Source of the DNA: Monocercomonoides exilis PA203
Lineage: Eukaryota > Protista > Preaxostyla
Assembly: GCA_001643675.2 (NCBI GenBank)
Contig: LSRY02000033.1
Coordinates: 930,001-994,000 of the forward strand
Direction of reading: 5' to 3'
Length of the DNA: 64,000 nucleotides
Position numbers and translations under genes: made by a program. The notes under the pieces are model-generated. The model did no database searches, was not told the DNA's origin, and saw only the letters and a list, made by a program, of their open reading frames with translations. The first letter of the stretch is position 1. Each line of letters opens with the position of its first letter. Below are positions 12,650 through 61,921 of this stretch, one piece after another.

Positions 12650-12950
12650 TTGATTAAAAAATTATTATACTCTTCAAAAATTTTTTTGTTAATCCATTAC
12701 AAACTAATTAATGTCTCATAAATTTTTATTTATAAAATCACGCTATTTTTTCAAAGATTTTCTTTGCGGAAAATGTTTTGCTTAAAAAAATATCTCATCG
12801 AAAACAAATAAATTGAAAAAATTCATTTTAATAAATAAAAATTTCATGGTATGAAATGATAAACTTTTTCAGACTTGCGTCACTTATTTTCCCTGTATTG
12901 AAAAAATACGATTTAAAATTGATTAATTGCAACTTTAGAAATTCTTTCAT

Positions 12951-13960
12951 TCATTGTTTTGAAATGATAAAAATGCAACATATCCCCAAAAACCGAATCA
13001 ATATCTTCCCTGTTCGAAAAGACTGATTTGAAGTGGAATGGCTCTTTATGTTCTGGAAAAAAGACGAAATGGAAGAATTGACAAAAAAGATAAAAAAACT
13101 ACACGAGTCATCAAGCCCATTGAGAACCAGACCATATCTTTTCGCATTGCTTGAAGGCGAAATGAAGCAAAAGAGCTGGAGAGAAGAAATCTCCAACAAG
13201 CAAACTCCTTTCTTTTTTCTGCGCTTCCTCCCAGAAATGCATCTGCAACCAAAGAGGATCTCGCAGCTCTACATCCAGCATCTGTTCATTTGCCATAACA
13301 ATTGCAATCCCCATGGGAATGTCGAACGGTTCTATCACCAAGACAAACAAAGCCATCTTCTCCTTCCCTCTTGGTCTTTATTCAACCTCATCTTCAACAC
13401 CCTTTTCGAATTTCGCTGCACCCTGCTCAAAATAATGAAGGCACACACGCTTAATAAGCAAAGAAAGCAGACGCACACAAATGCAATGCTTCTGCCTTCA
13501 AAACAGACTCTGCTTGTTGGAATTTTGAGCAATTGGTGCTCCGAGTCCATTTGTCCATCGCTGTCCAGGGTAATATTAACATCCCCTTTTCCCCACAGAG
13601 AAAATAGAAGTCAACAACAATCTTCTTTGCTCCGACCTTCTCGCCTTGGACTCCCACAGCACAAACGAAAAGACAAAAAAAGGCTTGCCCAGCTCCATCA
13701 GCAAAATCTGGTCAGTTCAATGCCTGTACAAAATCCCATGCACGCAAAAGGAGTAAAATATTCGCATCCATAACAGGCACAAATGCTTTTGGGAAATCAC
13801 AAGATTTCTTGTTCTCAATTCACAAACAAATGTTGAATCATTGTTCAATAACTCATCAACAAATTTTCGCCAACCGTTCATAAATAAATCATGTAGCTGT
13901 CTGGCGCACGTGTCATCGCTGATAACATTCTGTTCAAGACATCACAACATTTTTTATCTC
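12951..13960 (-). pseudogene. Probable decayed gene relic at the outer end of the left arm
   Basis: One minus-strand frame runs ~300 codons with only a few stops (CLEQNVISDDTCARQLHDLFMNGWRKFVDELLNND...MALFVLVIEPFDIPMGIAIVMANEQML...). The right-arm copy has different stops and indels. No family recognised. Confidence 0.35.
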
Positions 13961-14010
13961 AATCATTGTATCTTATGGGCGCAGGGCATCGACAAGTGGG
14001 TTGATCAGAA

Positions 14011-15924
14011 ATGGAACAAAACGCAAAAGCCGAGCTAGCAGAAGAAAAGAAGCCTGAGGGCGCAGAGGCCGGAGAAGGGGCAAGCGGCGCGCCCGGGGCA
14101 CCGCTGTCGAAGAATGCGCAGAAGCGTCTGGCGAAGCTGGAGGCGGCGCAGAAGAAGAAGGAGGAGAAAGAGGCGGCGAAGCGGGAGGCGGCAGCAAAGC
14201 GCGAAGCAGAGGGGAAGGGGAGCGCGGGGGAGGGGAAAGGGAGCCACGCAGACGAGGAGGAGAATGTGGACCCGCGGTTCTACTTCGAGAACCGGAAGAA
14301 AGTGATATATGGAGAGTCGAAGGACGAGCGGAACCCGAACTACCCGCACAAGTTTGGGGTGACGCTGAGCATCGGGGAGTTCATAGAGAAGTACGGGGCG
14401 CTGGAGGCAGGGGCGCGCGTGGAGGCAGACACGGTGTCGGTGGCAGGGCGGATCATGCTGCTGCGGCGGCAGAGCGCGAAGCTGGTGTTCTACGACATCC
14501 ACAACGACGGGCAGAAGATCCAGCTGATGTGCGACCTGCGGGCAGCGGAGAGCGCAGAGGAGTTTGCGGCGGTGCACGACAAGCTGCGGCGCGGGGACTG
14601 GGTCGGGGCGGTTGGGCACCCGGGGAAGACGAAGCGCGGGGAGCTGAGCCTGTTCCCGAGCAAGGTGGTGCTGCTGTCGCCGTGCCTGCACATGATGCCG
14701 CGTGTGGTGAAGGACCAGGAGCTGCGGCACCGGATGCGGGAGCTGGACCTGATGTTCAACCCGGAGAGCCTGGCGCGGTTCAAGACGCGGTCGAGGATCA
14801 TCACGTACATGCGGCAGTACCTGAACGAGCGGGGGTTCCTGGAGGTGGAGACGCCGATCCTGAACACGATAGCGGGCGGGGCGACGGCGAAGCCGTTTGT
14901 GACGCACCACAACACGCTGGACATCGACATGTACATGCGTGTGGCGCCGGAGCTGTATCTGAAGCGGCTGATTGTGGGGGGCATGAACCGGGTGTACGAG
15001 ATCGGGCGGCTGTTCCGGAACGAGGGGATGGACCAGACGCACAACCCGGAGTTCACGTCGTGCGAGTTCTATGCGGCGTTCCTGGACTACAACGACCTGA
15101 TGGAGCTGACGGAGGAGATGCTGAACGGGATGGTGAAGATGCTGAACGGCGGGCGGGAGACGGTGGTGCTGCGGGACAAGGAGGACCCGGAGAAGCTGGT
15201 GGAGGTGTCGTTTGCGCGGCCGTTCCGGCGGGTGTCGTTCATGGCGGAGCTGGCGAAGGAGATGGGGGTGGAGTTCCCGGCAGACCTGTCGACGCCGGAG
15301 ACGAACGAGTTCCTGCGGAAGCTGGCGAAGGAGCGGGAGGTGCCGTGCACGCCGCCGTTCACGACGGCGCGGCTGCTGGACAAGATGACAGAGAAGTATC
15401 TGGAGCCGTCGTTCAAGAACCCGACGTTCCTGTGCGACCAGCCGGCGATCATGTCTCCGCTGGCGAAGTACCACCGGGCGAACCCGCAGTGGACCGAGCG
15501 GTTTGAGCTGTTTGTGAACCACACGGAGCTGGCGAACGCGTACACGGAGCTGAACGACCCGGTGGTGCAGCGGAAGCGGTTTGACGCGCAGGCGGCAGCG
15601 AAGGCGCAGGGAGACGAGGAGGCGACGCTGATCGACGAGTACTTCTGCCGCTCGCTGGAGTACGGGCTGCCGCCCACAGCCGGGTGGGGGTTCGGGATCG
15701 ACCGTGCGGTGATCATGCTGACGCAGGCGCCGACCATCCAGGATGTGATCCTGTTCCCCACGCTGCGCCCCGAGATTGTCAACCCCACGCAGCTGCTGGC
15801 TGCGGAGGGCGCACAGACAGCCTCGTCCTCAACCACCCCTTCATCCTCGTCTTCATCTTCATCCTCGTCTTCCTCTTCCTCCTCAACCTCTCCTGCACCC
15901 TCTGCACCCTCAACCTCCTCGTGA
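14011..15924 (+). CDS. KARS: Lysyl-tRNA synthetase, class II, eukaryotic type; intronless; copy 1
   Basis: Eukaryotic N-terminal extension ([11 protein letters not shown]), YPHKF, OB-fold VAGRI...[17 protein letters not shown], motif 2 [19 protein letters not shown], motif 3 GWGFGIDR and VILFP. Confidence 0.98.
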
Positions 15925-16571
15925 ACACCCTGAACTGAACAACAATGCGCAATGCCCTTGGAGAAGGGCCTGAAGAGCCAGAAGAATCGGAAGAGCTGGA
16001 GCGGAGAGGAAAGGAAAGGCAAGCGGTCATCTGATTGTTTTTAGTCATTTCAGCACATCAAAGACAAAGATTATTTTGAGAATATGTTTTTCTGTCAGCT
16101 TTCATTTGCTTGTTTGTGTCTTTTTTGTGCCAGGAGAAAAAAAAAGTTTTGAAAAAGAAAAAGGGCAGAAAGCTCGTTTGTTTGCGATTCGCTTTTGGAC
16201 TTCATTGTTTCGTGATTTTCCTCCGTGTTTCCACGCAAAGGCAACGAAAAATAGAATTGAAGTGAATTCATCAGGAAATAATCCGGGTATGAAATGTGCT
16301 GCAGTCCACAGCACAGAAAACACGAAACAGCAGAGTTTCGCCAGCGCCACTGGCTGCAGCGCTTGGTTCATTGCACAGCCAACAAAAAAAGCAGCAGGAC
16401 AGGAAGAGCAGAAAGAGCAGAAAGACATTCAGTCATCCGCAATCTTCTGCTGCCCCGCAAAGCAGTTTGCTTTCCATCAATGATCGAGCCTGCCCAATGT
16501 TGTTTTCAAAACACAAAGCATTATTTTTTTATTGCCAAACCTTGTTTAATTTTTCTGCGAGCTGGCAGCCG

Positions 16572-19500
16572 ATGGCGATTCGGCATGTTGTAGCGATAGC
16601 AATGGCAGTGCTCTGCATTGCGCAGGGTTCTGGTGCTGACGCGTGGAAAAGGGGCACGGGGCCAGGGAAAAGCAATTTTGTCAAATCGTTTGATTCTGAG
16701 GCTCCGAGAGAAGAACGGGCACGCAAAAGCAGAGGAACGGAGACGCCTTTGCATGGACACGCAATCTCTGGAAAAGAGCCAGGAAGCGACCTTCGTGTGG
16801 CGGAAGGGACAGAAATAATGATGAGCGCTTTTTTGCGGAACAGCACGGCGAGGGTGGTGGGGGTGCAGCTTGCTCGGGTGCGGGAGGCAAGCAAGATGTT
16901 TTGTGTGGAGGAGGGTGTGCTGGAGGCGTGGGGGTGCATGGTGGAGGGGCGCGATGTTGAGAAAAGGAGTGCTTTTGAGAGCAGAGGCGGGGTGGTTGAG
17001 TTTGGGAATGTGACGATTGGTGGGCGCTGGAAGGGGATGCATGTGGCGCCTCTGGTGGAGGTGGTTGAAGGGGTTGGAACAGGGTTAGGTGCAGCAGGCG
17101 GGGTGAGTGTGAAGATTTCAGAAACGAGGCTTTGCTCGTTTGGAGTGGTGGCAGGGCCGCTGCTGCAGGGGGAGGAGGTGTGGGGGTGGGGGTGCGAGTT
17201 TGTGAACATCAGCAGAGAGGCAGGGGCGAAGGGGGTTGGGGGAGGGGTGTTTGGGAGGAGTGTTGTGGGGAGCTGTGTGTTTCGGAGGGTTGAGGACGAG
17301 CTGTATGGGGGGATTGTGGGGTCGATGGCCTTGGGAGACTCGGTGGAGGAGGGGAACACGACACACACGGGGTGCTGGCGGAAGGCAGGGTGCTACGAGA
17401 GCCATGTCGGGTGGGGCAGGCGGAAGGACATCAGCACGCACTATCCGCGGTGCCGGTTTGTGGGGTGCGAGTGGCGGGAGCTGGGAGAGGCGATTGAGGG
17501 GGGAGCGATCTACGCAGCGAACACGCAGGCGCCGCTCACGGTGGAGGTGGAGGAGTGCGGGTTCTACGGGGCGCGGGCGCTGCTGAACGGCGGGGCGATT
17601 CTGCTGCGGGGCAGGCGGCAGGGCTGGGGCAGAGGGAGGAACGAGGGAGGAGGAGAGAGTTGGCTGCAGTGCAAGCTGAGCGGGAGTGTGTTTGTGAACT
17701 GCAGCTCGTCAGCTGGGAGCGGGGGAGGAGTGTCGGTGGAGTGTGTGAGCGGGTGCGAGGTGAGGAGGTGCCGGTTCAGCGGGTGCAGAGGGCTGAGGGG
17801 AGGAGGCGGGGTGGCGCTGGCAGACAGGGAGAAAGGGGCGGGAGAGGCAGTGGTGGTGGTGGAGATTGAGGGGTGCGAGTTTGAGGGGTGCGGGGTGGAG
17901 GAGGCGAAGGGAGGCGGGGTGTGTGGGGAGGAGGTGTGGGTGGTGGTGCGGGAGTGCTGGTTGATGGGGTGCTGGGCGCAGTCGGAGGGCGGGGGGATGC
18001 ATGTTTGTGTGCAGACGCCTGTGGATGGGGGTGGAGCAGAGGCACAGGCAAACTCCCAAAACGGGGAAAAGAGAGGAAGACAAGGGAACGAGTATGGAGA
18101 GGCGATTGTGGGGCACTCGCTGTTCTCAGACAACAAGTGCCGGGCAGCCGCAGTGGAGGAGAGGCTGGGGCTGGATGTGTATCTGGACATTGTGTCGCTA
18201 ACAGACAGACACGCGTTTGTGGGGTGCTTCTCTGCAACGAAAGAGGAGGCAACTGTGATTGAGGCAGTATCATCATCATCAGCAGCAGCAACAACAACAA
18301 CAAAAGATGAGCAGAAATCCTCTGATAACACCATTTCACAAAGCACACTTCACGAAACACTTCACTCATTCGACTCATCATCATCTTCTTCTATTTCTTC
18401 TATTTCTTCTTTGCCATCATCATCATCATCGATGGCGAAATCAAGCATTTCACAGAACTCATCGACATCGCCTCCTTCAGTCAGTGGGTGTCCGATGAGA
18501 AAGGCGCAGCAATCTGGAGAGGGGAGGAGGAGCGCATGGGGTCGGCGGGTGTTTGCTCGGCACCTGTTGGACACGAGGGGAGAAGGGGGAGGAGAGGAGA
18601 GGGATGTTGGGCTGGAGTGGATGCGGACGACGATGGACAGGGTGTATGTGAGCAGGAGCGGGAGCGACGAGGTGGGGTTTTGCGGGTGGGACGAGGAGCA
18701 CGGGTGCGAGACGATGGGGAAGGCGCGGGGGCAGCTGTACTGCTGGGGTGGAGAGGAAGGGAGCGAGGGGTGTGTGGATGAGGAGAGCGGGGGAGAAGGC
18801 GGGGGTGGCAGAGGCAGAGGAAGAGGCAGAGGCAGAATGAGGAATGAAGAGGAAGAGGTGGGAGCGAGAGAAATGGTGATTGTGTCTGTGGATGAGAAGA
18901 AGGAGTGGGAAGGGGTGGATTTTGGGGAGAAGGCGGTGGATGTGAGCGGGGCAGGGGCAGCGGTGACGCGGATGTGGACGCGGGTGATGAGGGAGGGAGC
19001 GTGGGTGGTGCGTGTGGGAGGAGGGAGGGTGCGTGTGAGCGGGGTAGGGGTTGAGCAGGCAGGGGCAGAGCGGGAGACGGGGGTGGTGGGGGTGGAGGGG
19101 AGCGGGAGCGCGGAGGTGCGGAAGGTGGAGGTGGTGGGGGCAGGGGGTGGGGGTGTGGTGTTTGGGGTGAGCGGGGCAGGGAAGCTGGTGCTGGTGGGGG
19201 TGGCTGTGCGGGATGCAGCGCTGGTGTCGGGGGCGGTGGTGTCTGTGGGGGCGGGAGGAGCGCAGGGGGTGCGGCTGGAGTCGTGCTCTTTTGTGAACAT
19301 CAGCCGGGGCGGGGGGAGCGGGGGCTGTGTGCTGGACGGGGAGGGCGGTGCGTTCGGGGTGGTGTGTGCGGACTGCACATTTGCGCTGTGCAGTGCAGCG
19401 GGGTCGATGGCTGGGGGCGGGGTGGGGGTGTGGTCGGAGGGGGCGACGGAGGCGGCTGAGCTGTGGCGGTGCACGCTGTCGTCGTGCCGGGCAGCAGCAG

Positions 19501-22500
19501 GGGCAGCAGGGTCGGGGGCAGCGGAGGGGCGAGGCGGCGGGGTGCATGTGCGGGTGAGCGAGAGCGGGGGGTTTGTGCTGCGGGAGCTGCAGTTTGTGGG
19601 GAACGAGGCGACGCATGGGCGGGATGTGTTTGTGGTGTGCCCGGTGCTGCGGAACGTGGTGACGGAAGAGGCGTTTGCGTTCCGGCGGGGGATTGCAGAC
19701 ACGAGAAACTCGCTGTGCGGGACAGATGCAGAGTGTGAGGATGTGGACCTGGTGTGGCTGCTGACGGGGGTGAAGCATGAAGGGGTGGTGTATGTGCACT
19801 ATGCGCTGGCTGGTGGTGGAGGAGGAGGGCAACAGCCGAAGTGCGGGTTCGACTCGGCAGTGGAGTGCGGGACAGAGGAGGTGCCGTGCGAGCGGCTGGC
19901 AGTGGCGTGTGGGCGGTTTGCGGAGGGGAGCGTGGAGAAGCGACTGGTGGTGAAGGGGGAGTGTGTGATGGGGGGCGTTGGGGATCTGAGCGGGATGGAG
20001 GTGGAGCGGTGGGTGGGTGAGGAAGAGGGGGGCGCAGAGCCTGCGGTGGTGTCGTTTGCGGTGCTGGGCGGGGCAGGGGGAGAGGTGCAGGGGATCGGGA
20101 ACGGGGGTGTGCTGGGGGTGAGGGAGATCCGGTTTGTGCTGTATTCGGAGGTGGAGCCACCAGACGGGGCGCTGATTGAGACGCATGGGGAGCGGGCAGA
20201 GTTCAGAGACTGTGTGTTTGAGGCGCATGGCGGGGCGGGGGAGATCGGGTATGTGCTGGGGCGAGGGGTGCGGGGGCTGTTTGGGATGGAGCGGTGTGTG
20301 GTGCGGGGGAGCGGGGTGACGAGGTATGTGGGGAGTGTGTTTGAGCTGGAGACGTCGATTGGGGGCGGGGTGTTTGTGGAGACGCGGGTGGAAGGGCTGG
20401 CTGTTGGGGAGGGGAGCGTGTGGCGGGTGCGGAAGAACACGACGGAGACAGGGCGCGGGGTGGTGCAGGAGGGGCTGCGGCTGGAGGAGTGCGAGGCGGA
20501 GGAGGTGAAGGGAGGGGCAGGGGTGCCGTGCCTGGTGAGCTTTGAGGAGGGGTGCATGATGGGAGTGGAGGTGGTGGGGGGTGTGGTGCGGGAGTGTCTG
20601 TCGGCGAGCTCAGCGAAAGGCGGGGCGATGCTGGTGGGGGTGGCGGGGGAGCACCGGTTTGTGCTGAACGGGACGGTGGTGGAGTGCTCAGAGATTGGGG
20701 AGCGGGGAGCTGGGCGGCTGGCGTATGTGGAGTGCGGGGCAGGGGCAGAGTTCCTGTTTGTGCACCCGACGTTCACTCCGCTGGCGAGCACACTGAGCGA
20801 GTGCTTTGTGCGGGTGAGCTGCGGGGAGATGGCAGACGCGGATGTGGTGCGGGGGTTTGAGTGCGACATCTTCCTGTTCTCGGTGGGAGGGAGCAGCACG
20901 TTCTACGGGGTGGAGTTTGGGGACGAGAGGCTGCTGGCGACGCTGCTGGACACAGTGCTGAGGAGCCAGACGCACGAGGTGGTGGTGTCGGGGGAGACAG
21001 GGGCAGACACGGCAGGGTGCGGGGGCAGGGCGCAGGCGTGCCGGACGTTTGACTACGGGTGGCGGCGGGTGAGGGCGTGGGATGCGTTGGAGGAGCTGCC
21101 GAGGCTGCGGGTGAACGGGACAGGGATGGTGGGGCGGGAGGTGTATCTGGGGTATCGGGTGATTGAGGGTGCAGAGGAAGGGGTGCAGGCGCGGCTGGTG
21201 GTGGGGAGTGCTGTGCTGAGGCGGAGCAGCAGTGCAGGGGCAGTGTTCACGAACGCAGAGGAAGGGAAGCTTTCGTGTGTGGGGGTGGAGTATCCGCGGG
21301 TGCTGGAGCTGGGGCAGAGGGTGCTGTTTCTGGTGGTGGGCGGGGTGCTGGAGGTGGAGGACGGGCGGGTGGTGTGCAGGAGTCGAGAGGGTGTGGCGGG
21401 GGAGGCAGAAGCAGGCGGGGCAGCAGAGTTCCAGCTGGTGCGGGGAACAGGCGGGGAGCTGCGGGTGAGGAACACGAGCATCGGGTCTGAGTATGTGGGG
21501 AGCGTGTTTAAGGAGGCGGCGATGGAGGTGGCGGGGATGGTGTGCGAGTTTGTGGGGGTGAACGTGTCGAACATCGGAGCGCCGGAGAGCGGGGAAGGCG
21601 GGGCGCTGGCGGTGGATGTTGGGGCAGCGGGGTCGCTGAAGCTGAACAGCGGAGCAAGTGGCGCAGCAGCAGCAGCGGTGGGGTGTGTGTGCTCGGAGTA
21701 CAGCGGGCGGGGCGGGTTTTTGTATGTGGAGTGCGGGTCGAGTAGTGCAAGCGTGGAGATTGGGGCGATGGGGTTCAGCAGGAACGAGGCGCGGTGGGGG
21801 AAGAACATTTATGTGCGGGCAGATCGGCTGGAGGATGTGGTGAAGGAGGAGCAGATGGGGTTTGGGTGGGAGGTGTGGAAGGGAGAGGAGGAGGCGTTCT
21901 GCGGGGATGAAACGGGGGGCGGGGCAGGCGCAGGGGTGGTGGTGAACCTGCTGGTGTATCTGATGGGGCTGCAGTATGGGGTGGTGCATGTGTCGGAGAC
22001 AGAGGGGAGGGGGTATCCGGGGTGCGGGAGCGCAGGGGCGCCTTGTGCGACGTTTGAGCAGGGGGTGGCCAACTCGGCGGCAGAGGGCGGGCGGCGGACG
22101 ATGCGTGTGGTGCGGGGGGTGGGGGTGGCGAGGGGGTGCGATGTGTCAGGGTTTGCGATTGAGTCGAGCGGAGACACGGCGGCGAATGTGACGCTGGCGG
22201 GGAGCGTGGCTGGGAGCACAGAGCGGGCGGTGCTGACGAACGAGGGGGTGCTGTCGTTTTTGCGGGTGCGGTTTGTGGTGCCGCGGGAGTTTGCGGGCAA
22301 GCAGAGGGTGCTGGTGGGGACATACACAGCAGCAGGGTCGGTGGTGGTGGAGGAGTCGCAGTTCGACTTCACGGGGGCAGGGCCAGGGAAAGTGCAGTTC
22401 AGCCTGCTGGAGATAGTCGGGGGTGTGGGGGAGGTTGTGGGGTGCACAGTGTCGGGGGTGAGCTTTGGTGTTGAGATGTTTGTGTTTCGGGAAGAGGAAG

Positions 22501-26708: not shown

Positions 26709-26739
<31 letters not shown>

Positions 26740-27482
26740 AATACCGAGTGTCAGCCGGGAGGAGGGAGGAGAGGAAGAAGCGGGAGGAGCGGGAGAACGA
26801 GCGGAACATGTGGATGCGGGAGCTGGCGCAGGCGCAGCGGCGGGAAGAAGAGAAGAGGAGGGAAGAAGAGAAGAGGAGGGAGGAGGAGGCGCGGCGTGGA
26901 GAGGAAGAGGCAGCAGCGCGGGAGAAGGCAGCGGCAGAGCGGAGGAGGGCAGAAGAGGAGCAGGCAGCGGCAGAGGCGGCGAGGCGCAGGGAGGCGGGGG
27001 AGGTGATTGTGCGTGTGTGGAAGGAGCGGCAGGAGGTGTGGGCAGCGAAGAGGGAGCTGCGGGAGCTGCGGCAGGAGAAGCGAGAGAGAGAAGAGCGGGA
27101 GCGGAAGAGGAGGGAGGAAGAGGAAGCGGAAGCGATGGGGGAGGAGGGGGCAGCAGAGGCAGAAGAGAGGGCGCAGCGGGAGCGGGAAGAGCTGGAGGAG
27201 CTGGAGGAGATGAGGAGGAGAGAAGAGGAAGCAGAGGCAGAGGGAGAGGCAGAGGGAGAGGAAAGGAAGAGAAAGGAGGAAGAAGAAAGAAAAGAAAAAG
27301 AGGAAAAGGAAAAAGAAGAAGAGAGGAAGAAGAAAGAGGCAGCGAGGACAATTCTGAAGTTGTGGAGGAGGTGGAAGGAAGGGAAAAGAAGAGAAGAAGG
27401 AGTGGATGGAGATGAGGATGGGGATGGGGATGGGGAGCCAGAAGAGGCAGGGGTGCAGGAGGAAGGGAATTCTGGAGAGTGA
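16572..27482 (+). CDS. Giant (~3636 aa) type I membrane protein: signal peptide, repetitive beta-helix/Pmp-like ectodomain, TM helix, degenerate TKL-like kinase domain, Glu/Arg coiled-coil tail; copy 1
   Basis: ATG at 16572 gives signal-like MAIRHVVAIAMAVLCIAQGSGA. Repeated GGAI/GGGV and CGxxxxPCxT motifs. TM helix WPIILFMGMSAVGVVVVVVIVGCCV at ~24530-24605. Kinase C-lobe remnants RYKAPE, EKSVSFTVGMLLLEMMSGRRPF and LIEQCLSTEEGERPSLNEI. One uninterrupted ORF of ~11 kb. Confidence 0.85.
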
Positions 27483-28748: not shown

Positions 28749-28821
28749 TCACGCGCTCTCTGTTGTTGCCACACTCGGCTCTGCCACAGCTTTCTCTGTC
28801 TCTGCCTCCATCACAACCCCT

Positions 28822-52800: not shown

Positions 52801-55800
52801 GACACATTCACCCCCACAAACTCGCACACCATCCCCGCCACCTCCATCGCCGCCTCCTTAAACACGCTCCCCACATACTCCGACCCGATGCTCGTGTTCC
52901 TCACCCGCAGCTCCCCGCCTGTGCCCCGCACCAGCTGGAACTCCGCTGCCCCGCCTGCCTCTGCTTCCCCCGCTGCCTCCCCTCGACTCCTGCACACCAC
53001 CCGCCCGTCCTCCACCTCCAGCACCCCGCCCACCACCAGAAACAGCACCCTCTGCCCCAGCTCCAGCACCCGCGGATACTCCACCCCGACACACGAAAGC
53101 TTCCCTTCCTCTGCGTTCGTGAACACTGCCCCTGCGCTGCTGCTCCGCCTCAGCACAGCACTCCCCACCACCAGCCGCGCCTGCACCCCTTCCTCTGCAC
53201 CCTCAATCACCCGATACCCCAGATACACCTCCCGCCCCACCATCCCTGTCCCGTTCACCCGCAGCCTCGGCAGCTCCTCCGACGCATCCCACGCCCTCAC
53301 CCGCCGCCACCCGTAGTCAAACGTCCGGCACGCCTGCGCCCTGCCCCCGCACTCTGCCGTGTCTGCCCCTGTCTCCCCCGACACCACCACCTCGTGCGTC
53401 TGGCTCCCCAGCACTGTGTCCAGCAGCGTCTCCAGCAGCCCCTCGCCCCCAAACTCCACCCCGTAGAACGTGCTGCTCCCTCCTGCCGAGAACAGGAAGA
53501 TGTCGCACTCAAACCCCCGCACCACATCCGCGTCTGCCATCTCCCCGCAGCTCACCCGCACAAAGCACTCGCTCAGTGTGCTCGCCAGCGGAGTGAACGT
53601 CGGGTGCACAAACAGGAACTCTGCCCCTGCCCCGCACTCCACATACGCCAGCCGCCCAGCTCCCCGCTCCCCAACCTCTGAGCACTCCACCACCGTCCCG
53701 TTCAGCACAAACCGGTGCTCCCCCGCCACCCCCACCAGCATCGCCCCGCCTTTCGCTGAGCTCGCCGACAGGCACTCCCGCACTGCACCCCCCACCACCT
53801 GCACTCCCATCATGCACCCCTCCTCAAAGCTCACCAGGCACGGCACCCCTGCCCCTCCCTTCACCTCCTCCGCCTCGCACTCCTCCAGCCGCAGCCCCTC
53901 CTGCACCACTCCGCGCTCTGTCTCCGTCGTGTTCTTCCGCACCCGCCACACGCTCCCCTCCCCAACAGCCAGCCCTTCCACCCGCGTCTCCACAAACACC
54001 CCGCCTCCAATCGACGTCTCCAGCTCAAACACACTCCCCACATACCTCGTCACCCCGCTCCCCCGCACCACACACCGCTCCATCCCAAACAGCCCCCGCA
54101 CCCCTCGCCCCAGCACATACCCGATCACCCCCGCCCCGCCATGCGCCTCAAACACACAGTCTCTGAACTCTGCCCGCTCCCCATGCGTCTCAATCAGCAC
54201 CCCGTCTGGAGGCTCCACCTCCGAATACAGCACAAACCGGATCTCCCTCACCCCCAGCACACCCCCGTTCCCGATCCCCTGCACCTCTCCGCCTGCCCCA
54301 CCCAGCACCGCAAACGACACCACCCCAGGCTCTGTGCTCCCCTCTTCCTCACCCACCCACCGCTCCACCTCCATCCCGCTCAGATCCCCAACACCCCCCA
54401 TCACACACTCCCCCTTCACCACCAATCGCTTCTCCCTGCTCCCCTCCGCAAACCGCCCACGCCCCACTGCCAGCCGCTCGCACGGCACCTCCTCTGTCCC
54501 GCACTCCACTGCCGAGTCGAACCCGCACTTCGGCTGTTGCCCTCCTCCTCCACCACCAGCCAGCGCATAGTGCACATACACCACCCCTTCATGCTTCACC
54601 CCCGTCAGCAGCCACACCAGGTCCACATCCTGACACTCTGCATCTGTCCCGCACAGCGAGTTTCTCGTGTCTGCAATCCCCCGCCGGAACGCAAACGCCT
54701 CTTCCGTCACCACGTCCCGCAGCACCGGGCACACCACAAACACATCCCGCCCATGCGTCGCCTCGTTCCCCACAAACTGCAGCTCCCGCAGCACAAACCC
54801 CCCGCTCTCGCTCACCCGCACATGCACCCCGCCGCCTCGCCCCTCCGCTGCCCCCGACCCTGCTGCCCCTGCTGCTGCCCGGCACGACGACAGCGTGCAC
54901 CGCCACAGCTCAGCCGCCTCCGTCGCCCCCTCCGACCACACCCCCACCCCGCCCCCAGCCATCGACCCCGCTGCACTGCACAGCGCAAATGTGCAGTCTG
55001 CACACACCACCCCAAACGCCCCGCCCTCCCCATCCAGCACACAGCCCCCGCTCCCTCCGCTCCGGCTGATGTTCACGAAAGAGCACGACTCCAGCCGCAC
55101 CCCCTGCGCTCCTCCCGCCCCCACAGACACCACTGCCCCCGACACCAGCGCTGCATCCCGCACAGCCACCCCCACCAGCACCAGCTTCCCTGCCCCGCTC
55201 ACCCCAAACACCACACCCCCACCCCCTGCCCCCACCACCTCCACCTTCCGCACCTCCGCGCTCCCGCTCCCCTCCACCCCCACCACCCCCGTCTCCCGCT
55301 CTGCCCCTGCCTGCTCAATCCCCACCCCGCTCACACGCACCCTCCCTCCTCCCACACGCACCACCCACGCTCCCTCCCTCATCACCCGCGTCCACATCCG
55401 CGTCACTGCTGCCCCTGCCCCGCTCACATCCACCGCCTTCTCTCCAAAATCCACCCCTTCCCACTCCTTCTTCTCATCCACAGACACAATCACCATTTCT
55501 CGTGCAACTGCCTCTTCCTCTTCATCCCTCATCCTGCCTCTGCCTCTGCCACTGCCGCTGCCACCCCCGCCTTCTCCCCCGCTCTCCTCATCCACACACC
55601 CCTCGCTCCCTTCCTCCCCACCCCAGCAGTACAGCTGCCCCCGCGCCTTCCCCATCGTCTCGCACCCGTGCTCCTCGTCCCACCCGCAAAACCCCACCTC
55701 GTCGCTCCCGCTCCTGCTCACATACACCCTGTCCATCGTCGTCCGCATCCACTCCAGCCCAACATCCCTCTCCTCTCCTCCCCCTTCTCCCCTCGTGTCC

Positions 55801-57791
55801 AACAGGTGCCGAGCAAACACCCGCCGACCCCATGCGCTCCTCCTCCCCTCTCCAGATTGCCGCGCCTTTCTCATCGGACACCCACTGACTGAAGGAGGCG
55901 ATGTCGATGAGTTCTGTGAAATGCTTGATTTCGCCATCGATGATGATGATGATGGCAAAGAAGAAATAGAAGAAGAAGAAGAAGATGATGATGATGAGTC
56001 GAATGAGTGAAGTGTTTCGTGAAGTGTGCTTTGTGAAATGGCGTTGTCAGAAGATTTCTGCTCATCTTTTGTTGATGATGACGATGATGATGATACTGCC
56101 TCAATCACAGTTGCCTCCTCTTTCGTTGCAGAGAAGCACCCCACAAACGCGTGTCTGTCTGTCAGCGACACAACGTCCAGATACACATCCAGCCCCAGCC
56201 TCTCCTCCACTGCGGCTGCCCGGCACTTGTTGTCTGAGAACAGCGAGTGCCCCACAATCGCCTCTCCATGCTCATTCCCTTGCCTTCCTCTCCTTTCCCC
56301 GTTTTGGGAGTTTGCCTGTGCCTCTGCTCCACCCCCATCCACAGGCGTCTGCACACAAACATGCATCCCCCCGCCCTCCGACTGCGCCCAGCACCCCATC
56401 AACCAGCACTCCCGCATCACCACCCACACCTCCTCGCCACACACCCCGCCTCCCTTCGCCTCCTCCACCCCGCACCCCTCAAACTCGCACCCCTCAATCT
56501 CCACCACCACCACTGCCTCTCCTGCCCCTTTCTCCCTGTCTGCCAGCGCCACCCCGCCTCCTCCCCTCAGCCCTCTGCACCCGCTGAACCGGCACCTCCT
56601 CACCTCGCACCCGCTCACACACTCCACCGACACTCCTCCCCCGCTCCCAGCTGACGAGCTGCAGTTCACAAACACACTCTCGCTCAGCTTGCACTGCAGC
56701 CAACTCGCTCCTCCTCCCTCGTTCCTCCCTCTGCCCCAGCCCTGCCGCCTGCCCCGCAGCAGAATCGCCCCGCCGTTCAGCAGCGCCCGCGCCCCGTAGA
56801 ACCCGCACTCCTCCACCTCCACCGTGAGCGGCGCCTGCGTGTTCGCTGCGTAGATCGCTCCTCCCTCAATCGCCTCTCCCAGCTCCCGCCACTCGCACCC
56901 CACAAACCGGCACCGCGGATAGTGCGTGCTGATGTCCTTCCGCCTGCCCCACCCGACATGGCTCTCTTCGCACCCTGCCTTCCGCCAGCACCCCGTGTGT
57001 GTTGTGTTCCCCTCCTCCACCGAGTCTCCCAAGGCCATCGACCCCACAATCCCCCCATACAGCTCGTCCTCAACCCTCCGAAACACACAGCTCGCCACAA
57101 CACTCCTCCCAAACACCCCTCCCCCAACCCCCTTCGCCCCTGCCTCTCTGCTGATGTTCACAAACTCGCATCCCCACCCCCACACCTCCTCCCCCTGCAG
57201 CAGCGGCCCTGCCGCCACTCCAAACGAGCAAAGCCTCGTTTCTGAAATCTTCACACTCACCCCGCCGGCTGCACCTAACCCTGTTCCAGCCCCTTCAACT
57301 GCCTCCACCAGAGGCGCCACATGCATCCCCTTCCAGTGCCCACCGATCGTCACATTCCCAAACTCAGCCACCCCCCCTCTGCTCTCAAACGCACTCCTTT
57401 TCTCAACATCGCGCCCCTCCACCATGCACCCCCACGCCTCCAGCACACCCTCCTCCACACAAAATATCTTGCTTGCCTCCCGCGCCCGAGCAAGCTGCAC
57501 CCCCACCACCCTCACCGTGCTGTTCCGCAAAAACCCGCTCATCATTATTTCTGTCCCTTCCGCCACACGAAGGTGGCCTCTTGGCTCTTTTCCAGAGCTT
57601 GCGTTTCCATGCAAAGGTGTCTCCGTTCCTCTGCTTTTGCGTGCCTGTTCTTCTCTCGGGGCCTCAGAATCAAACGATTTGACAAAATTGCTTTTCCCTG
57701 GCCCTGTGCCCCTTTTCCACGCGTCAGCACCAGAACCCTGCGCAATGCAGAGCACTGCCATTGCTATCGCCACAACATGCCGAATCGCCAT
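46869..57791 (-). CDS. Giant (~3640 aa) receptor-like pseudokinase, copy 2
   Basis: Same architecture as 16572-27482. Differs by scattered substitutions and in-frame indels in low-complexity tracts, and the ORF is intact. Confidence 0.85.
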   Translation of the reverse strand: MAIRHVVAIAMAVLCIAQGSGADAWKRGTGPGKSNFVKSFDSEAPREEQARKSRGTETPLHGNASSGKEPRGHLRVAEGTEIMMSGFLRNSTVRVVGVQLARAREASKIFCVEEGVLEAWGCMVEGRDVEKRSAFESRGGVAEFGNVTIGGHWKGMHVAPLVEAVEGAGTGLGAAGGVSVKISETRLCSFGVAAGPLLQGEEVWGWGCEFVNISREAGAKGVGGGVFGRSVVASCVFRRVEDELYGGIVGSMALGDSVEEGNTTHTGCWRKAGCEESHVGWGRRKDISTHYPRCRFVGCEWRELGEAIEGGAIYAANTQAPLTVEVEECGFYGARALLNGGAILLRGRRQGWGRGRNEGGGASWLQCKLSESVFVNCSSSAGSGGGVSVECVSGCEVRRCRFSGCRGLRGGGGVALADREKGAGEAVVVVEIEGCEFEGCGVEEAKGGGVCGEEVWVVMRECWLMGCWAQSEGGGMHVCVQTPVDGGGAEAQANSQNGERRGRQGNEHGEAIVGHSLFSDNKCRAAAVEERLGLDVYLDVVSLTDRHAFVGCFSATKEEATVIEAVSSSSSSSTKDEQKSSDNAISQSTLHETLHSFDSSSSSSSSSSISSLPSSSSSMAKSSISQNSSTSPPSVSGCPMRKARQSGEGRRSAWGRRVFARHLLDTRGEGGGEERDVGLEWMRTTMDRVYVSRSGSDEVGFCGWDEEHGCETMGKARGQLYCWGGEEGSEGCVDEESGGEGGGGSGSGRGRGRMRDEEEEAVAREMVIVSVDEKKEWEGVDFGEKAVDVSGAGAAVTRMWTRVMREGAWVVRVGGGRVRVSGVGIEQAGAERETGVVGVEGSGSAEVRKVEVVGAGGGGVVFGVSGAGKLVLVGVAVRDAALVSGAVVSVGAGGAQGVRLESCSFVNISRSGGSGGCVLDGEGGAFGVVCADCTFALCSAAGSMAGGGVGVWSEGATEAAELWRCTLSSCRAAAGAAGSGAAEGRGGGVHVRVSESGGFVLRELQFVGNEATHGRDVFVVCPVLRDVVTEEAFAFRRGIADTRNSLCGTDAECQDVDLVWLLTGVKHEGVVYVHYALAGGGGGGQQPKCGFDSAVECGTEEVPCERLAVGRGRFAEGSREKRLVVKGECVMGGVGDLSGMEVERWVGEEEGSTEPGVVSFAVLGGAGGEVQGIGNGGVLGVREIRFVLYSEVEPPDGVLIETHGERAEFRDCVFEAHGGAGVIGYVLGRGVRGLFGMERCVVRGSGVTRYVGSVFELETSIGGGVFVETRVEGLAVGEGSVWRVRKNTTETERGVVQEGLRLEECEAEEVKGGAGVPCLVSFEEGCMMGVQVVGGAVRECLSASSAKGGAMLVGVAGEHRFVLNGTVVECSEVGERGAGRLAYVECGAGAEFLFVHPTFTPLASTLSECFVRVSCGEMADADVVRGFECDIFLFSAGGSSTFYGVEFGGEGLLETLLDTVLGSQTHEVVVSGETGADTAECGGRAQACRTFDYGWRRVRAWDASEELPRLRVNGTGMVGREVYLGYRVIEGAEEGVQARLVVGSAVLRRSSSAGAVFTNAEEGKLSCVGVEYPRVLELGQRVLFLVVGGVLEVEDGRVVCRSRGEAAGEAEAGGAAEFQLVRGTGGELRVRNTSIGSEYVGSVFKEAAMEVAGMVCEFVGVNVSNIGAPESGEGGALAVDVGAAGSLKLNSGASGAAAAAVGCVCSEYSGRGGFLYVECGSRSASVEVGAMGFSKNEARWGKNIYVRAGRLEDVVREEQMGFGWEAWKGDEEAFCGDETGGGAGAGVVVNLLVYLMGLQYGVVHVSETKGRGYPGCGSAGAPCATFEQGVANSAAEGGRRTMRVVRGVEVARGCDVSGFAIESSGDTAANVTLAGSVAGSTERAVLTNEGALSFLRVRFVVPREFAGGQRVLVGTYTAAGSVAVEESQFDFTGAGAGAVQFSLLEIVGGVGEVVGCTVSGVSFGVEMFVFREEEEEEAFVEELLNGVKGGKRGKGRRNEGWGMFEVRGCNFTNVRTELNGSVVSEGAQGAGYRIANGTVQSCQTTQNGGGCFVEIGAGSRVSVEDVRMVWCGAGERGGAVYVRIGSGAGHEELGLGLHRLSFAGNSGAAGRDVFVECLNMERQVHYSAFTLTREQFEGASGYEIRGCDGLVGCGAGDGVDLFEVIRFRRGREVFASSTAGGRTEQRMCGTEGAPCGTLAVAAEHLDNEAGKMLHVVGRVELRGQAVLEDVGVQRWGEGSRAEIGIEIGEAGEEEEEEGEEGNGRANGVDEALPLIMAHGEVRFEEVGIEVRALRGGGAGHPAIIGTDGQLALVKCELWCSGGGGGEESSQLVGCPLILADGSGGMGRSGECVLVVEECVVRGEGQRQSDPEVIRGRRARVEVGGTAVSGVFGAGSRSGLCRMESQLVLVEECECRVWNTSVVNSSKGGIGQRGGVVVVDGVEFGDNNPLIEGYPSVRRNMVCSGGGVVEVRGIRNGERAGESRSWWIMEEGCVVEGASGGAGGVYFRPVLTNVSWTSSGGQARLEFVGRELVQCGLYFQIIVRGADGGERVRTYRFESTGQNTERRGYGRIGREVIEESGAEEEVLARVVYSSEELAVEERGGGEGGEGRAGEEAGEGGKFYATAAIVLKGKGAGAGRRQSLYERYGWPIILFMGMSAVGVVVVVVIVGCCVRQRRQGKERERRLVESGSKVLGQNREMQSAAFERVRRYGADGAEVGEEDVEVGVLLSALAQDKEMAEAARKSKAESGNAEGAEGSAGEERGEERGEERGEGHDGQEGNEGNEGNEGQEGQEEHEGGGREGEESNESNENEGRDGGREEGGDERAEEREEREGEGEGRRGESGMGTGMREERRGSVWLGRRKKIPCIRCESPFGGVIVDEGRTLARLLHWEEEESGGGEEGAGEEGGLWEELRRGFGGGSAEERARCAAKVVFWVVNGCQHILRSGESGMLLMNLSPWAVMVSGEDVVVKRYGSKRRGEARRSEERALRYKAPELFTREDCGEGRRKREQRARAESERRARMERERMERARMENERGERGMECAGEREVRELGPEVFGGWSGEEGGREDVVEVNEKVRFRADATEKSVSFTVGMLLLEMMSGRRPFWEAESEFGAGKEVYRGKGQEYGRRVMEEILAGGRGGGSGGGEGGEGEGDRGGGESTALRLSVFDALIEQCLSTEEGERPSLNEIKRELMNLFEAGSKELSGEHAFVDDEEEEEDEDEEEDEDEEEEGEEREGEGRYCGRGRSVDEEGQRDAQSGSEERRRERREGLEQGKEQGREEERDQERDREREEREKLVRLIEETRRKGQQQEEEEKEAVKREEARVKERLAEKLRRRWAMGGRRSERGKGEADREGADGEEGKEKDDDGDDDDGEYRVSAGRREERKKREERENERNMWMRELAQAQRREEEKRREEEKRREEEARRGEEEAAAREKAAAERRRAEEEQAAAEAGRRREAGEVIVRVWKERQEVWAAKRELRELRQEKREREERERKRREEEEAEAMGEEGAAEAEERAQREREELEELEEMRRREEEAEAEGEAEGEAEGEERRRAEEEEKEKEKEERKRKEEEERKEKEEKEKEEERKKKEAARTILKFWRRWKEGKRREEGVDGDGDGDGEPEEAGVQEEGNSGG

Positions 57792-58456
57792 CGGCTGCCA
57801 GCTCGCAGAAAAATTAAACAAGGATTGGCAATAAAAAAATAATGCTTTGTGTTTTGAAAACAACATTGGGCAGGCTCGATCATTGATGGAAAACAAACTG
57901 TTTTGCGGGGCAGCAGAAGATTGCGGATGACTGAATGTCTTTCTGCTCTTTCTGCTCATTCTGCTCTGCTGCCTTTTTGTTTGGCTGTGCAATGAACCAA
58001 GCGCTGCAGCTGGTGGCGCTGGCGAAACTCTGCTGTTTCGTGTGTTCTGTGCTGTGGACTGCAGCACATTTCATGCCCTGATTATTTCCTGATGAAATCA
58101 TTTCAATTCTATTTTTCGTTGCCTTCGTGTGGAAACACGGAGGAAAATCACGAAACAATGTTTGCGATTCGCTTTTGGATTTCAAACGAGCATTCTGCCC
58201 TTTTTCTTTTTCAAAACTTTTTTACCCCCCGAGCACAAAAAAGACACAAACAAGCAAATGAAAGCTGACAGAAAAATATATTCTCAAAATAATCTTTGTC
58301 TTTGATGTGCTGAAATGACTAAAAACAATCAGATGACCGCTTGCCTTTCCTTTCCGCTCCGCCCCAGCTCTTCCGATTCTTCTTGCTCTTCCGGTTATTC
58401 CAGTTCTTCAGGCCCTTCTCCAAGGGCATTGCGCAGCATTGTTCAGCTCAGGGTGT

Positions 58457-60370
58457 TCACGACGAGGTTGAGGGTGCAGAGGGTGCAGGAGAGGTTGAGG
58501 AGGAAGAGGAAGAGGAAGACGAGGATGAAGATGAGGATGAAGGAGTGGTTGAGGAAGAGGCTGTCTGTGCGCCCTCCGCAGCCAGCAGCTGCGTGGGGTT
58601 GACAATCTCGGGGCGCAGCGTGGGGAACAGGATCACATCCTGGATGGTCGGCGCCTGCGTCAGCATGATCACCGCACGGTCGATCCCGAACCCCCACCCG
58701 GCTGTGGGCGGCAGCCCGTACTCCAGCGAGCGGCAGAAGTACTCGTCGATCAGCGTCGCCTCCTCGTCTCCCTGCGCCTTCGCTGCCGCCTGCGCGTCAA
58801 ACCGCTTCCGCTGCACCACCGGGTCGTTCAGCTCCGTGTACGCGTTCGCCAGCTCCGTGTGGTTCACAAACAGCTCAAACCGCTCGGTCCACTGCGGGTT
58901 CGCCCGGTGGTACTTCGCCAGCGGAGACATGATCGCCGGCTGGTCGCACAGGAACGTCGGGTTCTTGAACGACGGCTCCAGATACTTCTCTGCCATCTTG
59001 TCCAGCAGCCGCGCCGTCGTGAATGGCGGCGTGCACGGCACCTCCCGCTCCTTCGCCAGCTTCCGCAGGAACTCGTTCGTCTCCGGCGTCGACAGGTCTG
59101 CCGGGAACTCCACCCCCATCTCCTTCGCCAGCTCCGCCATGAACGACACCCGCCGGAACGGCCGCGCAAACGACACCTCCACCAGCTTCTCCGGGTCCTC
59201 CTTGTCCCGCAGCACCACCGTCTCCCGCCCGCCGTTCAGCATCTTCACCATCCCGTTCAGCATCTCCTCCGTCAGCTCCATCAGGTCGTTGTAGTCCAGG
59301 AACGCCGCATAGAACTCGCACGACGTGAACTCCGGGTTGTGCGTCTGGTCCATCCCCTCGTTCCGGAACAGCCGCCCGATCTCGTACACCCGGTTCATGC
59401 CCCCCACAATCAGCCGCTTCAGATACAGCTCCGGCGCCACACGCATGTACATGTCGATGTCCAGCGTGTTGTGGTGCGTCACAAACGGCTTCGCCGTCGC
59501 CCCGCCCGCTATCGTGTTCAGGATCGGCGTCTCCACCTCCAGGAACCCCCGCTCGTTCAGGTACTGCCGCATGTACGTGATGATCCTCGACCGCGTCTTG
59601 AACCGCGCCAGGCTCTCCGGGTTGAACATCAGGTCCAGCTCCCGCATCCGGTGCCGCAGCTCCTGGTCCTTCACCACACGCGGCATCATGTGCAGGCACG
59701 GCGACAGCAGCACCACCTTGCTCGGGAACAGGCTCAGCTCCCCGCGCTTCGTCTTCCCCGGGTGCCCAACCGCCCCGACCCAGTCCCCGCGCCGCAGCTT
59801 GTCGTGCACCGCCGCAAACTCCTCTGCGCTCTCCGCTGCCCGCAGGTCGCACATCAGCTGGATCTTCTGCCCGTCGTTGTGGATGTCGTAGAACACCAGC
59901 TTCGCGCTCTGCCGCCGCAGCAGCATGATCCGCCCTGCCACCGACACCGTGTCTGCCTCCACGCGCGCCCCTGCCTCCAGCGCCCCGTACTTTTCTATGA
60001 ACTCCCCGATGCTCAGCGTCACCCCAAACTTGTGCGGGTAGTTCGGGTTCCGCTCGTCCTTCGACTCTCCATATATCACTTTCTTCCGGTTCTCGAAGTA
60101 GAACCGCGGGTCCACATTCTCCTCCTCGTCTGCGTGGCTTCCTTTCCCCTCCCCCGCGCTCCCCTTCCCCTCTGCTTCGCGCTTTGCTGCCGCCTCCCGC
60201 TTCGCCGCCTCTTTCTCCTCCTTCTTCTTCTGCGCCGCCTCCAGCTTCCCCAGACGCTTCTGCGCATTCTTCGACAGCGGTGCCCCGGGCGCGCCGCTTG
60301 CCCCTTCTCCGGCCTCTGCGCCCTCGGGCTTCTTTTCTTCTGCTAGCTCCGTTTTTGCGTTTTGTTCCAT
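58457..60370 (-). CDS. KARS: Lysyl-tRNA synthetase, copy 2
   Basis: 637 aa like copy 1. I see three amino-acid differences: KAELA/KTELA, RLAK/RLGK and MTEK/MAEK. Confidence 0.98.
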
Positions 60371-60419
60371 TTCTGATCAACCCACTTGTCGATGCCCTGC
60401 GCCCATAAGATACAATGAT

Positions 60420-61430
60420 TGAGATAAAAAATGTTGTGATGTCTTGCACAGAGTGTTATCAGCGACATCACAAGCACCAGGCAGATGCATGATTTATTTA
60501 CGAGAACATAGTGAAAATTTGTTGTTGAGCCATTGAACAATGATTCAACATTTGTTTGTGAATTGAGAACAAGAAATCTTGTGATCTCCCAAAAGTATTT
60601 GTGCCTGCTGTGAATGTGAATGTTTTATTCCTTTTGTGTGCATGGGATTTTGTACAGACATTGAACTGACCAGATTTTGCTGATGGAGCTGGGCAAGCCT
60701 TTTTTGGTCTTTTCGTTTGTGCTGTGGGAGTCCAAGGCGAGAAGGTCGGAGCGAAGAAGATTGTTGTTGACTTCTATTTTCTCTGTGGGGAAAAGGGGAT
60801 GTTAATATTTCCCTGGATTTTGATGGACAAATGGACTCGGAGCACCAATTGCTCAAAATTCCAACAAGCAGAGTCTGTTTTGAAGGCAGAAGCATTGCAT
60901 TTGTGTTAGTCTGCTTTCATTGCTTATTAAGCGTGTGCGCCTTCATTATTTTGAGCAGGGTGCAGCGAAATTCGAAAAGGGAGTTGCGGAAGAGGCTGAA
61001 CAAAGACGAAGAGGAAAGGAGAAGATGGCTTTGTTTGTCTTGGTGATAGAATCGTTAAGTCACATCTCGACTTGCTGTTGTTATGGCAAATGGGCAGATG
61101 CTGGATGCAACGCTGTGAGATCCTCTTTGATTGCAGATGCTTTTCTGGGAGGAAGCACAGAAAAAAGAAAAAGGAGTTTGCTTGTTGGAGATTTCTTCTC
61201 TCCAGCTCCTTTGCTTCATTTCACCTTCACTCAGCGCGAAAGGATATGGTCTGGTTCTCAATGGACATGATAAATTGTACTGTTTTATCATCTCTTTTGT
61301 AAATCCTTCCGTTTCGTCTTTTTTCCAGAACATAAAGAGCCATTCCACTTCAAATCAGCCTTTTCGAACAGGGAGAGCATTGATTTGGTGATTGGGGTGT
61401 GTTACATTTTTATCATTTCAAAACAATGAA
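60420..61430 (+). pseudogene. Probable decayed gene relic, right-arm copy
   Basis: Homologous to 12951-13960 but with its own stops (e.g. TAG TGA at ~60508) and indels. Confidence 0.35.
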
Positions 61431-61921
61431 TGAAAGAATTTCTAATGTTTGAATTTACTGGGTTCTGAAGCTTTCCGTTGACTGAAAATCTTTTTAAAGT
61501 TAAAGGCCAAACTATCAAAATAAGTTAGATGATTCATATTTAAAATAAGAATCCAGTTTTGTTCAATAATTGCAAGAACTGTTGCAATTTTTTAATGTTG
61601 AATATTTCACTGTTTAGATATTTAACACTACTTCAATAAATTGTCACAGGCTTGTGTAATTAAATTTGTGTGTGCGTGTGTTCGAGTTGAAAATAAAAAT
61701 CGAAAAAAACCGCCAGGAGTAACAAAACAATAAGCATTGAAAATCAAATGCTTCTTTCAACGGAAAAGGAATGCTATAAAAACAGCTTGAAAACTTGTAA
61801 ATACTCAAAAGAGAATGAAAAATAAGCAAACTTATATTCAACATAAACTTTAAAAGATGATAGCTGAATTGAAAATAAAGAATTAACAATGTTGTTATTA
61901 TCAAATAGGTATAGTCTAATT

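Follow-up and report, generated by a model that had tools for sequence, protein, structure and literature searches.

A 48.5-kb gene-bearing palindrome with arms of zoned identity in the genome of Monocercomonoides exilis

Architecture and gene content of the palindrome

The stretch of DNA considered here, called the window below, comprises 64 kb of the published assembly of the oxymonad flagellate Monocercomonoides exilis PA203 (C29:930001-994000 of 82,301,135 bp in 101 contigs). It contains a palindrome of 48.5 kb, in which two long inverted arms lie around a unique spacer inside one chromosome (Table 1; positions are those of the window unless another contig is named). Each arm carries a lysyl-tRNA synthetase (LysRS) gene, a giant receptor-like gene and a metal-transporter gene of the CNNM/CBS type. 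The assembly was made with Canu 1.8 from 12.9 Gb of Oxford Nanopore (ONT) reads (about 150x) with an N50 of 8.9 kb, polished with Nanopolish and then with ten rounds of Pilon, and has a G+C content of 37.2% (PMC8767320).

A preliminary description of this DNA, made from its letters, had placed a palindrome at 12931-61449 and suggested a self-comparison. Self-BLAST gives exactly these limits, as two collinear inverted matches: 12931-27337 pairs with 61449-47055 (96.2%, 14.5 kb), and 27258-32913 pairs with 47087-41426 (97.7%, 5.7 kb). A repeat search of the window links the arms through 24 collinear inverted segments. Self-BLAST found no further repeats of at least 100 bp between other parts of the window, and scans of the window for tRNA genes and for Rfam families came back empty.

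All four junctions are sharp and, as had been noted at the outset, the sequences beyond them are unrelated. Three junction flanks were searched against the genome (the DNA to the left of arm A, that to the right of arm B, and the right end of the spacer), and each occurs once; the arm stretch 12931-14000 occurs exactly twice. Comparison of the junctions revealed no target-site duplication, terminal inverted repeat (TIR) or other repeat, nor are short inverted repeats able to prime a fold-back evident at the ends of the spacer. Recombinase and transposase domains were likewise not found in the scanned open reading frames (ORFs) of the window, those of the spacer and flanks included. The claim that transposase and target-site duplication are absent thus holds for the scanned spacer and flank ORFs and for the outer junctions.

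The LysRS protein has an N-terminal anticodon OB fold, matched by Pfam at 46 bits, beside its catalytic core, and it belongs to class II, with relatives among the cytosolic enzymes of eukaryotes. The two arm copies are the only LysRS matches in a search of the genome. Since its closest relatives are those of other Preaxostyla (71% identity in Blattamonas nauphoetae, 58% in Paratrimastix pyriformis), the gene is taken to be native. In Blattamonas, a related oxymonad, LysRS was found on a single contig (JARBJD010000003.1:616768-638507), and no repeat is present in the fetched locus of 21.7 kb, which includes 10 kb on each side. Its neighbours there are Snf7/Ist1, a 383-amino-acid kinase, Metallophos and EF1, and no gene of the M. 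exilis arms or spacer is among them. Given that all the neighbours differ, the gene order of the M. exilis arms is not ancestral at the distance of Blattamonas. Between the arms, LysRS shows a synonymous divergence (dS) of 0.028 and a dN/dS of 0.07, and ordinary purifying selection would largely explain its conservation.

A gene relic had also been proposed upstream of LysRS, as the first element of a mirrored order relic, LysRS, giant receptor and CNNM. That order stands for the three genes; the relic is a diverged non-coding region upstream of LysRS. Its ORF at 13033-13773 has no significant Pfam match and 12 stops break its frame in arm B, and no third copy of 12931-14000 was found in the genome; the reading as a gene relic is rejected on these grounds.

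The giant gene encodes an ectodomain rich in glycine, valine and glutamate that resembles a beta-helix, one transmembrane segment at residue 2746, and a degenerate kinase C-lobe. Pieces of it match Beta_helix (22.5 bits) and Pkinase (13.9 bits), both under the curated Pfam cut-offs, and a Pfam scan of the entire ORF gives zero matches; “receptor kinase” is therefore a description of this gene and not a family membership. The cytosolic kinase-like region, 25131-26195, is probably a pseudokinase: it keeps an APE-like motif and the C-lobe, but its catalytic-loop motif and its DFG-like motif appear degenerate. About 500 residues of low complexity, rich in glutamate, arginine and lysine, follow. 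The gene is one of a large family of ORFs of 2,000-4,200 amino acids whose other members are just 23-30% identical to it. Between the arms, its dS is 0.043 and its dN/dS is 0.43 (chi-square 47.6 against neutrality), and all 18 indels between the two ORFs are multiples of 3. The suggestion that the palindrome keeps two working copies of its genes is thus upheld in part: LysRS and the giant gene are intact in both arms and under purifying selection, and for LysRS this selection accounts for most of the conservation.

CNNM lies next to the spacer in both arms and its transcription runs away from it. The Pfam CNNM match reaches 63.7 bits, the CBS match is weak, and the exon layout is common to a paralogue on contig C69. 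The gene was analysed from 28749-29590 and 29640-32849, multi-exon genes being searched exon by exon. Words of 27800-33400 are present in the DNA runs of the source sample (fractions of 0.76-0.86), which is no independent evidence on structure, and in four metatranscriptome runs (0.43-0.48), which is no proof of structure either; the latter are compatible with expression of CNNM.

The spacer was said to hold RPL24, an epimerase and a coiled-coil gene, and does so: the first two were confirmed by Pfam and the third as an ORF. Extra copies of RPL24e, compared with its first exon ORF, are found at C40:524013-524402 (89% amino acid identity) and C58:1712310-1712702 (85%), and the match on C40 includes a TGA. 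The spacer also holds a hairpin resembling a miniature inverted-repeat transposable element (MITE), which has at least 40 copies in the genome, with matches on both strands. It is set 500 bp into the spacer, counted from the left junction, and 3.6 kb off the centre of symmetry; a second, partial copy is at 34163-34241.

Table 1. Features of the palindrome in the window, and of two further palindromes in the same genome (positions in their own contigs)
Feature	Position	Strand	Size	Description
Arm A	12931-32913		19,983 bp	Inverted match to 41426-61449; 97.7% identity over aligned columns
Region upstream of LysRS (described earlier as a relic)	12931-14010	+		Diverged outer edge; 90.6% identical between arms
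LysRS, copy A	14011-15924	+	637 amino acids	Class II, single exon; Pfam tRNA-synt_2, 293 bits
Giant gene, copy A	16296-27482	+	ORF of 3,728 amino acids	Probable start 16572 (signal-peptide-like)
CNNM/CBS metal transporter, copy A	28749-32849	-		Multi-exon; 5' end 64 bp from spacer junction
CNNM copy A, exon ORFs	32349-32849, 31612-32058, 30976-31419, 28749-30956	-		
Spacer	32914-41425		8,512 bp	AT-rich (27-36% GC); no counterpart elsewhere in the window
Hairpin MITE-like dispersed repeat	33417-33664		248 bp	100-nt arms, 78% complementary
Coiled-coil-like ORF	35632-37809	+	725 amino acids	E/K-rich, low complexity; no Pfam match
NAD-dependent epimerase/dehydratase	39041-40087	-		At least two exons (39515-40087, 39041-39442); Pfam Epimerase, 60.2 bits
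RPL24e	40401-40974	+		Two exon ORFs, the first at 40401-40820; Pfam Ribosomal_L24e, 76.7 bits
Arm B	41426-61449		20,024 bp	Inverted copy of arm A
CNNM, copy B	41490-45586	+		Mirror of copy A
Giant gene, copy B	46869-58067	-	ORF of 3,732 amino acids	Intact; 97% amino acid identity to copy A
LysRS, copy B	58457-60370	-	637 amino acids	634/637 amino acids identical to copy A
C80 palindrome	C80: 1358938-1365624, 1365778-1372467		13.5 kb	6.7-kb arms, 153-bp spacer
C28 palindrome	C28: 378957-408244, 435571-464674		85.7 kb	29-kb arms, 27.3-kb AT-rich spacer

Zoned identity of the arms and its probable origin

Between the arms, 457 aligned positions differ and 37 indel events are seen, and the arms fall into zones. 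The outer zone, 12931-28377 (15.4 kb), is 97.04% identical and has 454 substitutions. Over the 4,509 bp aligned in the inner zone, 28378-32894 (mirrored at about 41445-45964), there are none; a divergence of 3% predicts about 136, and the probability of finding zero is about e^-136. At the inner edge, 32895-32913, three mismatches occur in the final 19 bp of homology (84% identity). The step in identity is at 28365-28377, in indel-rich, tail-to-tail intergenic DNA about 370 bp beyond the CNNM stop codon, and the identical zone is essentially the CNNM transcription unit. Low divergence is also seen in the LysRS core, 14389-15824, where 2 differences in 1,436 bp are found versus about 15 synonymous ones expected at the dS of the neighbouring gene; LysRS as a whole is 99.2% identical between the arms, with 16 variants, and the giant gene has 256 variants. 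In the giant gene the longest run of identity is 415 bp, above the 312 bp at which a uniform model places the 99th percentile, and the non-coding parts of the arms are 90.6-96.5% identical. The arms are thus not above 99% identical along their length, as arms of the sex-chromosome type are, and their identity forms a mosaic beyond neutral expectation.

Are these differences real? The indels of the giant ORF, all multiples of 3, together with the purifying selection on LysRS and the giant gene, indicate that on sequence grounds the arm differences behave as the evolution of real paralogues and not as error. The inner zone is another matter. Its copies differ only in the length of C or A homopolymers, by 1 bp at six places, and in one AAAGAG unit. 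The homopolymer indels at 30907, 31029, 31379 and 31956 are in exons, the indel sites at 32239, 32268 and 32312 are in introns, and the exon frames disrupted by the homopolymer indels are different ones in copies A and B. Because no substitutions surround them, these indels are almost certainly residual ONT consensus errors. Such leftover errors in identical zones make false CNNM frameshifts and can mislead gene prediction.

The palindrome is not the only one of its kind in this genome. The preliminary description had proposed a search for similar structures; two more were verified, on contigs C80 and C28, with the same zoning. In the C80 palindrome, the inner 5.6 kb are identical and divergence in the outer 1 kb is 4-10%; in the C28 palindrome, the inner 6.4 kb contain 3 mismatches and the outer 23 kb show 2-4% mismatch. 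In each of the three palindromes, then, 4.5-6.4 kb beside the spacer are nearly identical. Their spacers range from 153 bp to 27 kb, and all three are interior to large (megabase) contigs. The inner boundaries of the C28 and C80 palindromes are perfectly sharp, with 100% identity up to the break. This shared zoning suggests a genome-wide process that starts homogenisation at spacer boundaries.

As to the contents of these two palindromes, each C80 arm has a 709-amino-acid ORF and a copy of the 250-bp MITE-like repeat, and the C28 arms have about ten ORFs, including a Nar1/Fe-hydrogenase-like gene. A fold-back seeded by MITEs was considered for the C29 palindrome and is unsupported: its MITE is inside the spacer and away from the centre, and those of C80 are inside the arms.

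The C29 palindrome is probably an old inverted segmental duplication in which gene conversion between the arms has homogenised patches of them, for the most part close to the spacer. According to this proposal, a block of about 20 kb, made up of the LysRS upstream region, LysRS, the giant gene and CNNM, would have been duplicated once, in inverted orientation, around a single-copy segment of 8.5 kb. The two arms would next have diverged as real paralogues, and intrachromosomal recombination between them would later have re-homogenised some of their parts. We infer gene conversion as the homogenising process, and it would have been most recent and most frequent beside the spacer, where the 4.5-kb tract corresponds to the CNNM unit. 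One end of this putative tract would lie 19 bp short of the homology boundary, and the other in the indel-rich intergenic DNA past the 3' end of CNNM. Since the last 19 bp are diverged, the inner boundary at 32913 appears to be old, with conversion halting just short of it. The LysRS core may represent an older or separate conversion tract. It is tempting to propose that diverged, indel-rich intergenic DNA blocks the extension of heteroduplex, as it probably would, so that conversion becomes gene-sized and patchy.

The idea of a self-correcting palindrome survives, then, in a restricted form. The signature of copying between arms is there, in the inner zone and in the LysRS core, yet three quarters of each arm have drifted to 97%, with a dS of 0.03-0.04 and a divergence of about 8-10% in non-coding DNA. 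Correction therefore seems to be local and episodic, not arm-wide as in the sex-chromosome palindromes of primates. If the arms crossed over anywhere in their perfectly matched inner 4.5 kb, the spacer between them would be inverted. The scanned ORFs of the window contain no recombinase domain such as that of a dedicated site-specific enzyme of the 2-micron FLP type, and general homologous recombination would have to carry out the inversion. Inversion through the inner zone would leave each gene its own promoter, and no switch is implied.

Several points weigh against a homogenised old duplication. The structure is known here from assembled sequence. The zone without differences may be exaggerated, as Canu correction and ten rounds of Pilon could have erased sparse paralogous variants. 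Conversion tracts cannot be given a direction from two sequences that lack an outgroup. Finally, the same zoning could come from inward expansion of the repeat, and the perfectly sharp inner boundaries of the C28 and C80 palindromes are compatible with this.

Inward expansion deserves the closest attention, even if we regard it as unlikely. It holds that the palindrome first ended near 28377, that CNNM was then single-copy and lay at one end of a spacer larger than the present one, and that repair later copied it, inverted, to the other end of the spacer, so that the identical zone would be young. Boundaries of the plastid inverted repeat shift by such expansion. The step-like change at 28365-28377, with indel-rich sequence just outside it, is what this scenario would leave, and so is a young-looking zone abutting the spacer in three palindromes, two of which have inner junctions that are identical up to a sharp break. 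However, a recent copy would be expected to match right up to where it ends, and the three mismatches in the final 19 bp of the C29 arms are instead like those of the old outer edge; the 16 matches in these 19 bp are too many for chance or microhomology. In addition, expansion would have had to occur three times independently, each time over a similar length (4.5-6.4 kb).

An artefact of assembly is improbable. It could take the form of a haplotype mis-join, an ONT fold-back chimera or a repeat-induced mis-join, or the inner identity could have been made by polishing. In its favour, this is a heavily polished ONT/Canu assembly whose multi-copy regions were polished less well, according to the authors of the genome paper themselves (PMC8767320), and the sole differences in the inner zone are the presumed consensus errors that break the CNNM frames differently in each copy. 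However, a fold-back chimera consists of identical arms without a spacer, and here there are 457 codon-respecting differences and an 8.5-kb unique spacer with genes. Alleles, for their part, need homologous outer flanks and spacer ends, and these are unrelated. Since the searched junction flanks occur once, mis-joined haplotypes, a fold-back chimera and transposon arms are all unlikely. Moreover, three megabase contigs each have this architecture in their interior. With outer zones, spacer and flanks that are effectively unique, only the orientation of the spacer is ambiguous for an assembler, and either orientation is a palindrome; the N50 of the ONT reads also exceeds the length of the identical zone.

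A mobile-element origin, with the arms as giant TIRs of a DNA transposon or as an element with cargo inserted twice in opposite orientations, is most improbable. The spacer has a MITE-like hairpin, but it lies away from both the junctions and the centre. In the scanned spacer and flank ORFs no transposase or recombinase domain is found, the giant ORF has no Pfam match, no target-site duplication borders the outer junctions, and 12931-14000 occurs only twice in the genome and the searched flanks once. A regional centromere of the Schizosaccharomyces pombe or Candida tropicalis type was also considered and rejected, as arms and core are coding and 12931-14000 has no third copy in the genome.

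Composition of the arms

The arm genes differ in base composition from the genes around them. LysRS, the giant gene and two CNNM exons have a G+C content at third codon positions (GC3) of 0.73-0.88 and a G content at these positions (G3) of about 0.6; for LysRS the values are 0.88 and 0.62. The flank and spacer genes have GC3 of 0.29-0.51 and G3 of 0.14-0.32, and Blattamonas LysRS has 0.50 and 0.20. The shift is milder in the two outermost CNNM stretches (GC3 0.60-0.64, G3 0.41-0.51). In exon 2 of CNNM, GC3 and G3 are 0.82 and 0.63 in the arm versus 0.44 and 0.30 in the C69 paralogue. Of 64 synonymous third-position differences between arm CNNM and this paralogue, 55 are toward G or C in the arm and 46 toward G. 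The sense strand of the arm genes has a GC skew of +0.5 to +0.6 (14011-32849 and its mirror).

The shift is not confined to codons. Introns and intergenic DNA of the arms are still AT-rich, yet non-coding DNA has 39-43% GC in the arms versus 27-29% outside, about 12 points higher, and introns contain 24-31% G in the arms versus 13% in the C69 paralogue. In distantly related paralogues of the giant gene at other places in the genome, GC is 40-48%. The C28 arms are enriched in GC and G3 like those of C29 (GC3 of 0.45-0.73 in C28 arm ORFs; 0.23-0.44 in the C28 flanks), whereas the C80 arms are of ordinary composition (arm gene GC3 0.40, G3 0.25). A 34-place G3-periodic pattern, aimed at other G-rich islands, has 173,274 matches over the genome, mostly in acidic GAR/GAT tracts. 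A foreign origin of the GC-rich block, by lateral gene transfer, was entertained and rejected: the kin of LysRS are Preaxostyla, and the exon layout of CNNM is that of a native paralogue.

What, then, could have produced this composition? GC-biased conversion in palindromes has been documented in primates (PMC8981503). A speculative proposal, to which we give a low probability, is that palindrome arms in M. exilis are zones of intense, strand-asymmetric biased gene conversion favouring G, or of transcription-coupled recombination, which rewrites the codon usage of housekeeping genes. If so, palindromes would be engines of compositional evolution in an AT-rich genome, and the C28 palindrome would show a milder version. 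However, an excess of G relative to C on the sense strand is not expected from plain GC-biased gene conversion. Moreover, since the shift far exceeds the divergence of the arms, which is at most 10%, much of it may predate the duplication. Alternatively, causality may be reversed, with G-skewed, R-loop-prone gene clusters being the sites where palindromes form.

Comparison with known palindromes and inverted repeats

In the library of papers searched, none deals with palindromes or inverted duplications in Monocercomonoides, and the text of the genome paper contains neither “inverted” nor “palindrom” (PMC8767320). The locus is of interest for several reasons. A palindrome that appears to recombine harbours both LysRS genes, the sole ones in the genome, of a model amitochondriate (mitochondrion-lacking) eukaryote. 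Palindromic duplication may be one route by which the giant receptor/kinase family grows. An AT-rich protist genome with palindromes that differ in age would also offer a natural test of GC-biased conversion.

The plastid inverted repeat has arms of 10-30 kb around a single-copy region, with flip-flop isomers, copy correction, and boundaries that expand and contract. The M. exilis locus is of similar scale; it differs in that it is nuclear, its arms are not uniformly identical, and its isomers are hypothetical.

As regards origin, fold-back or template-switch repair of double-strand breaks gives inverted duplications in yeast and in cancer amplicons (PMC10622511). Like these, the M. exilis palindrome has sharp junctions and no transposon hallmarks, and such repair is a plausible mode of origin. 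However, the spacers of fold-back duplications are normally tens to hundreds of bp, as in the C80 palindrome (153 bp), and not 8.5 kb as at the C29 locus.

The closest parallel in form is with the palindromes of the primate X and Y chromosomes (P1-P8 and those of the X), in which multi-kilobase gene conversion passes from arm to arm, inversions are rare, and conversion raises GC (PMC3723533, PMC8981503); inversions of the spacer type are rare in a human Y palindrome (PMC3723533). In both cases, large inverted arms with genes lie around a unique spacer. The primate arms, however, are >99% to 99.9% identical throughout, whereas in M. exilis homogenisation appears limited to the LysRS core and the 4.5 kb next to the spacer, and the rest is at 97%. 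The cargo of the former is testis genes; that of the latter is the sole LysRS, a housekeeping gene, and a gene of a receptor family. The host, moreover, is an asexual-looking gut flagellate, and its compositional shift is far larger than that in primates and strand-asymmetric, toward G and not G+C. Thus, a palindromic segmental duplication with arm-to-arm conversion, as this locus probably is, is of a known kind, and what is new is the host. Apart from the host, its distinctive features are a cargo that includes the sole LysRS, the centre-weighted homogenisation that it seems to share with the C80 and C28 palindromes, and a G-rich composition that is as yet unexplained.

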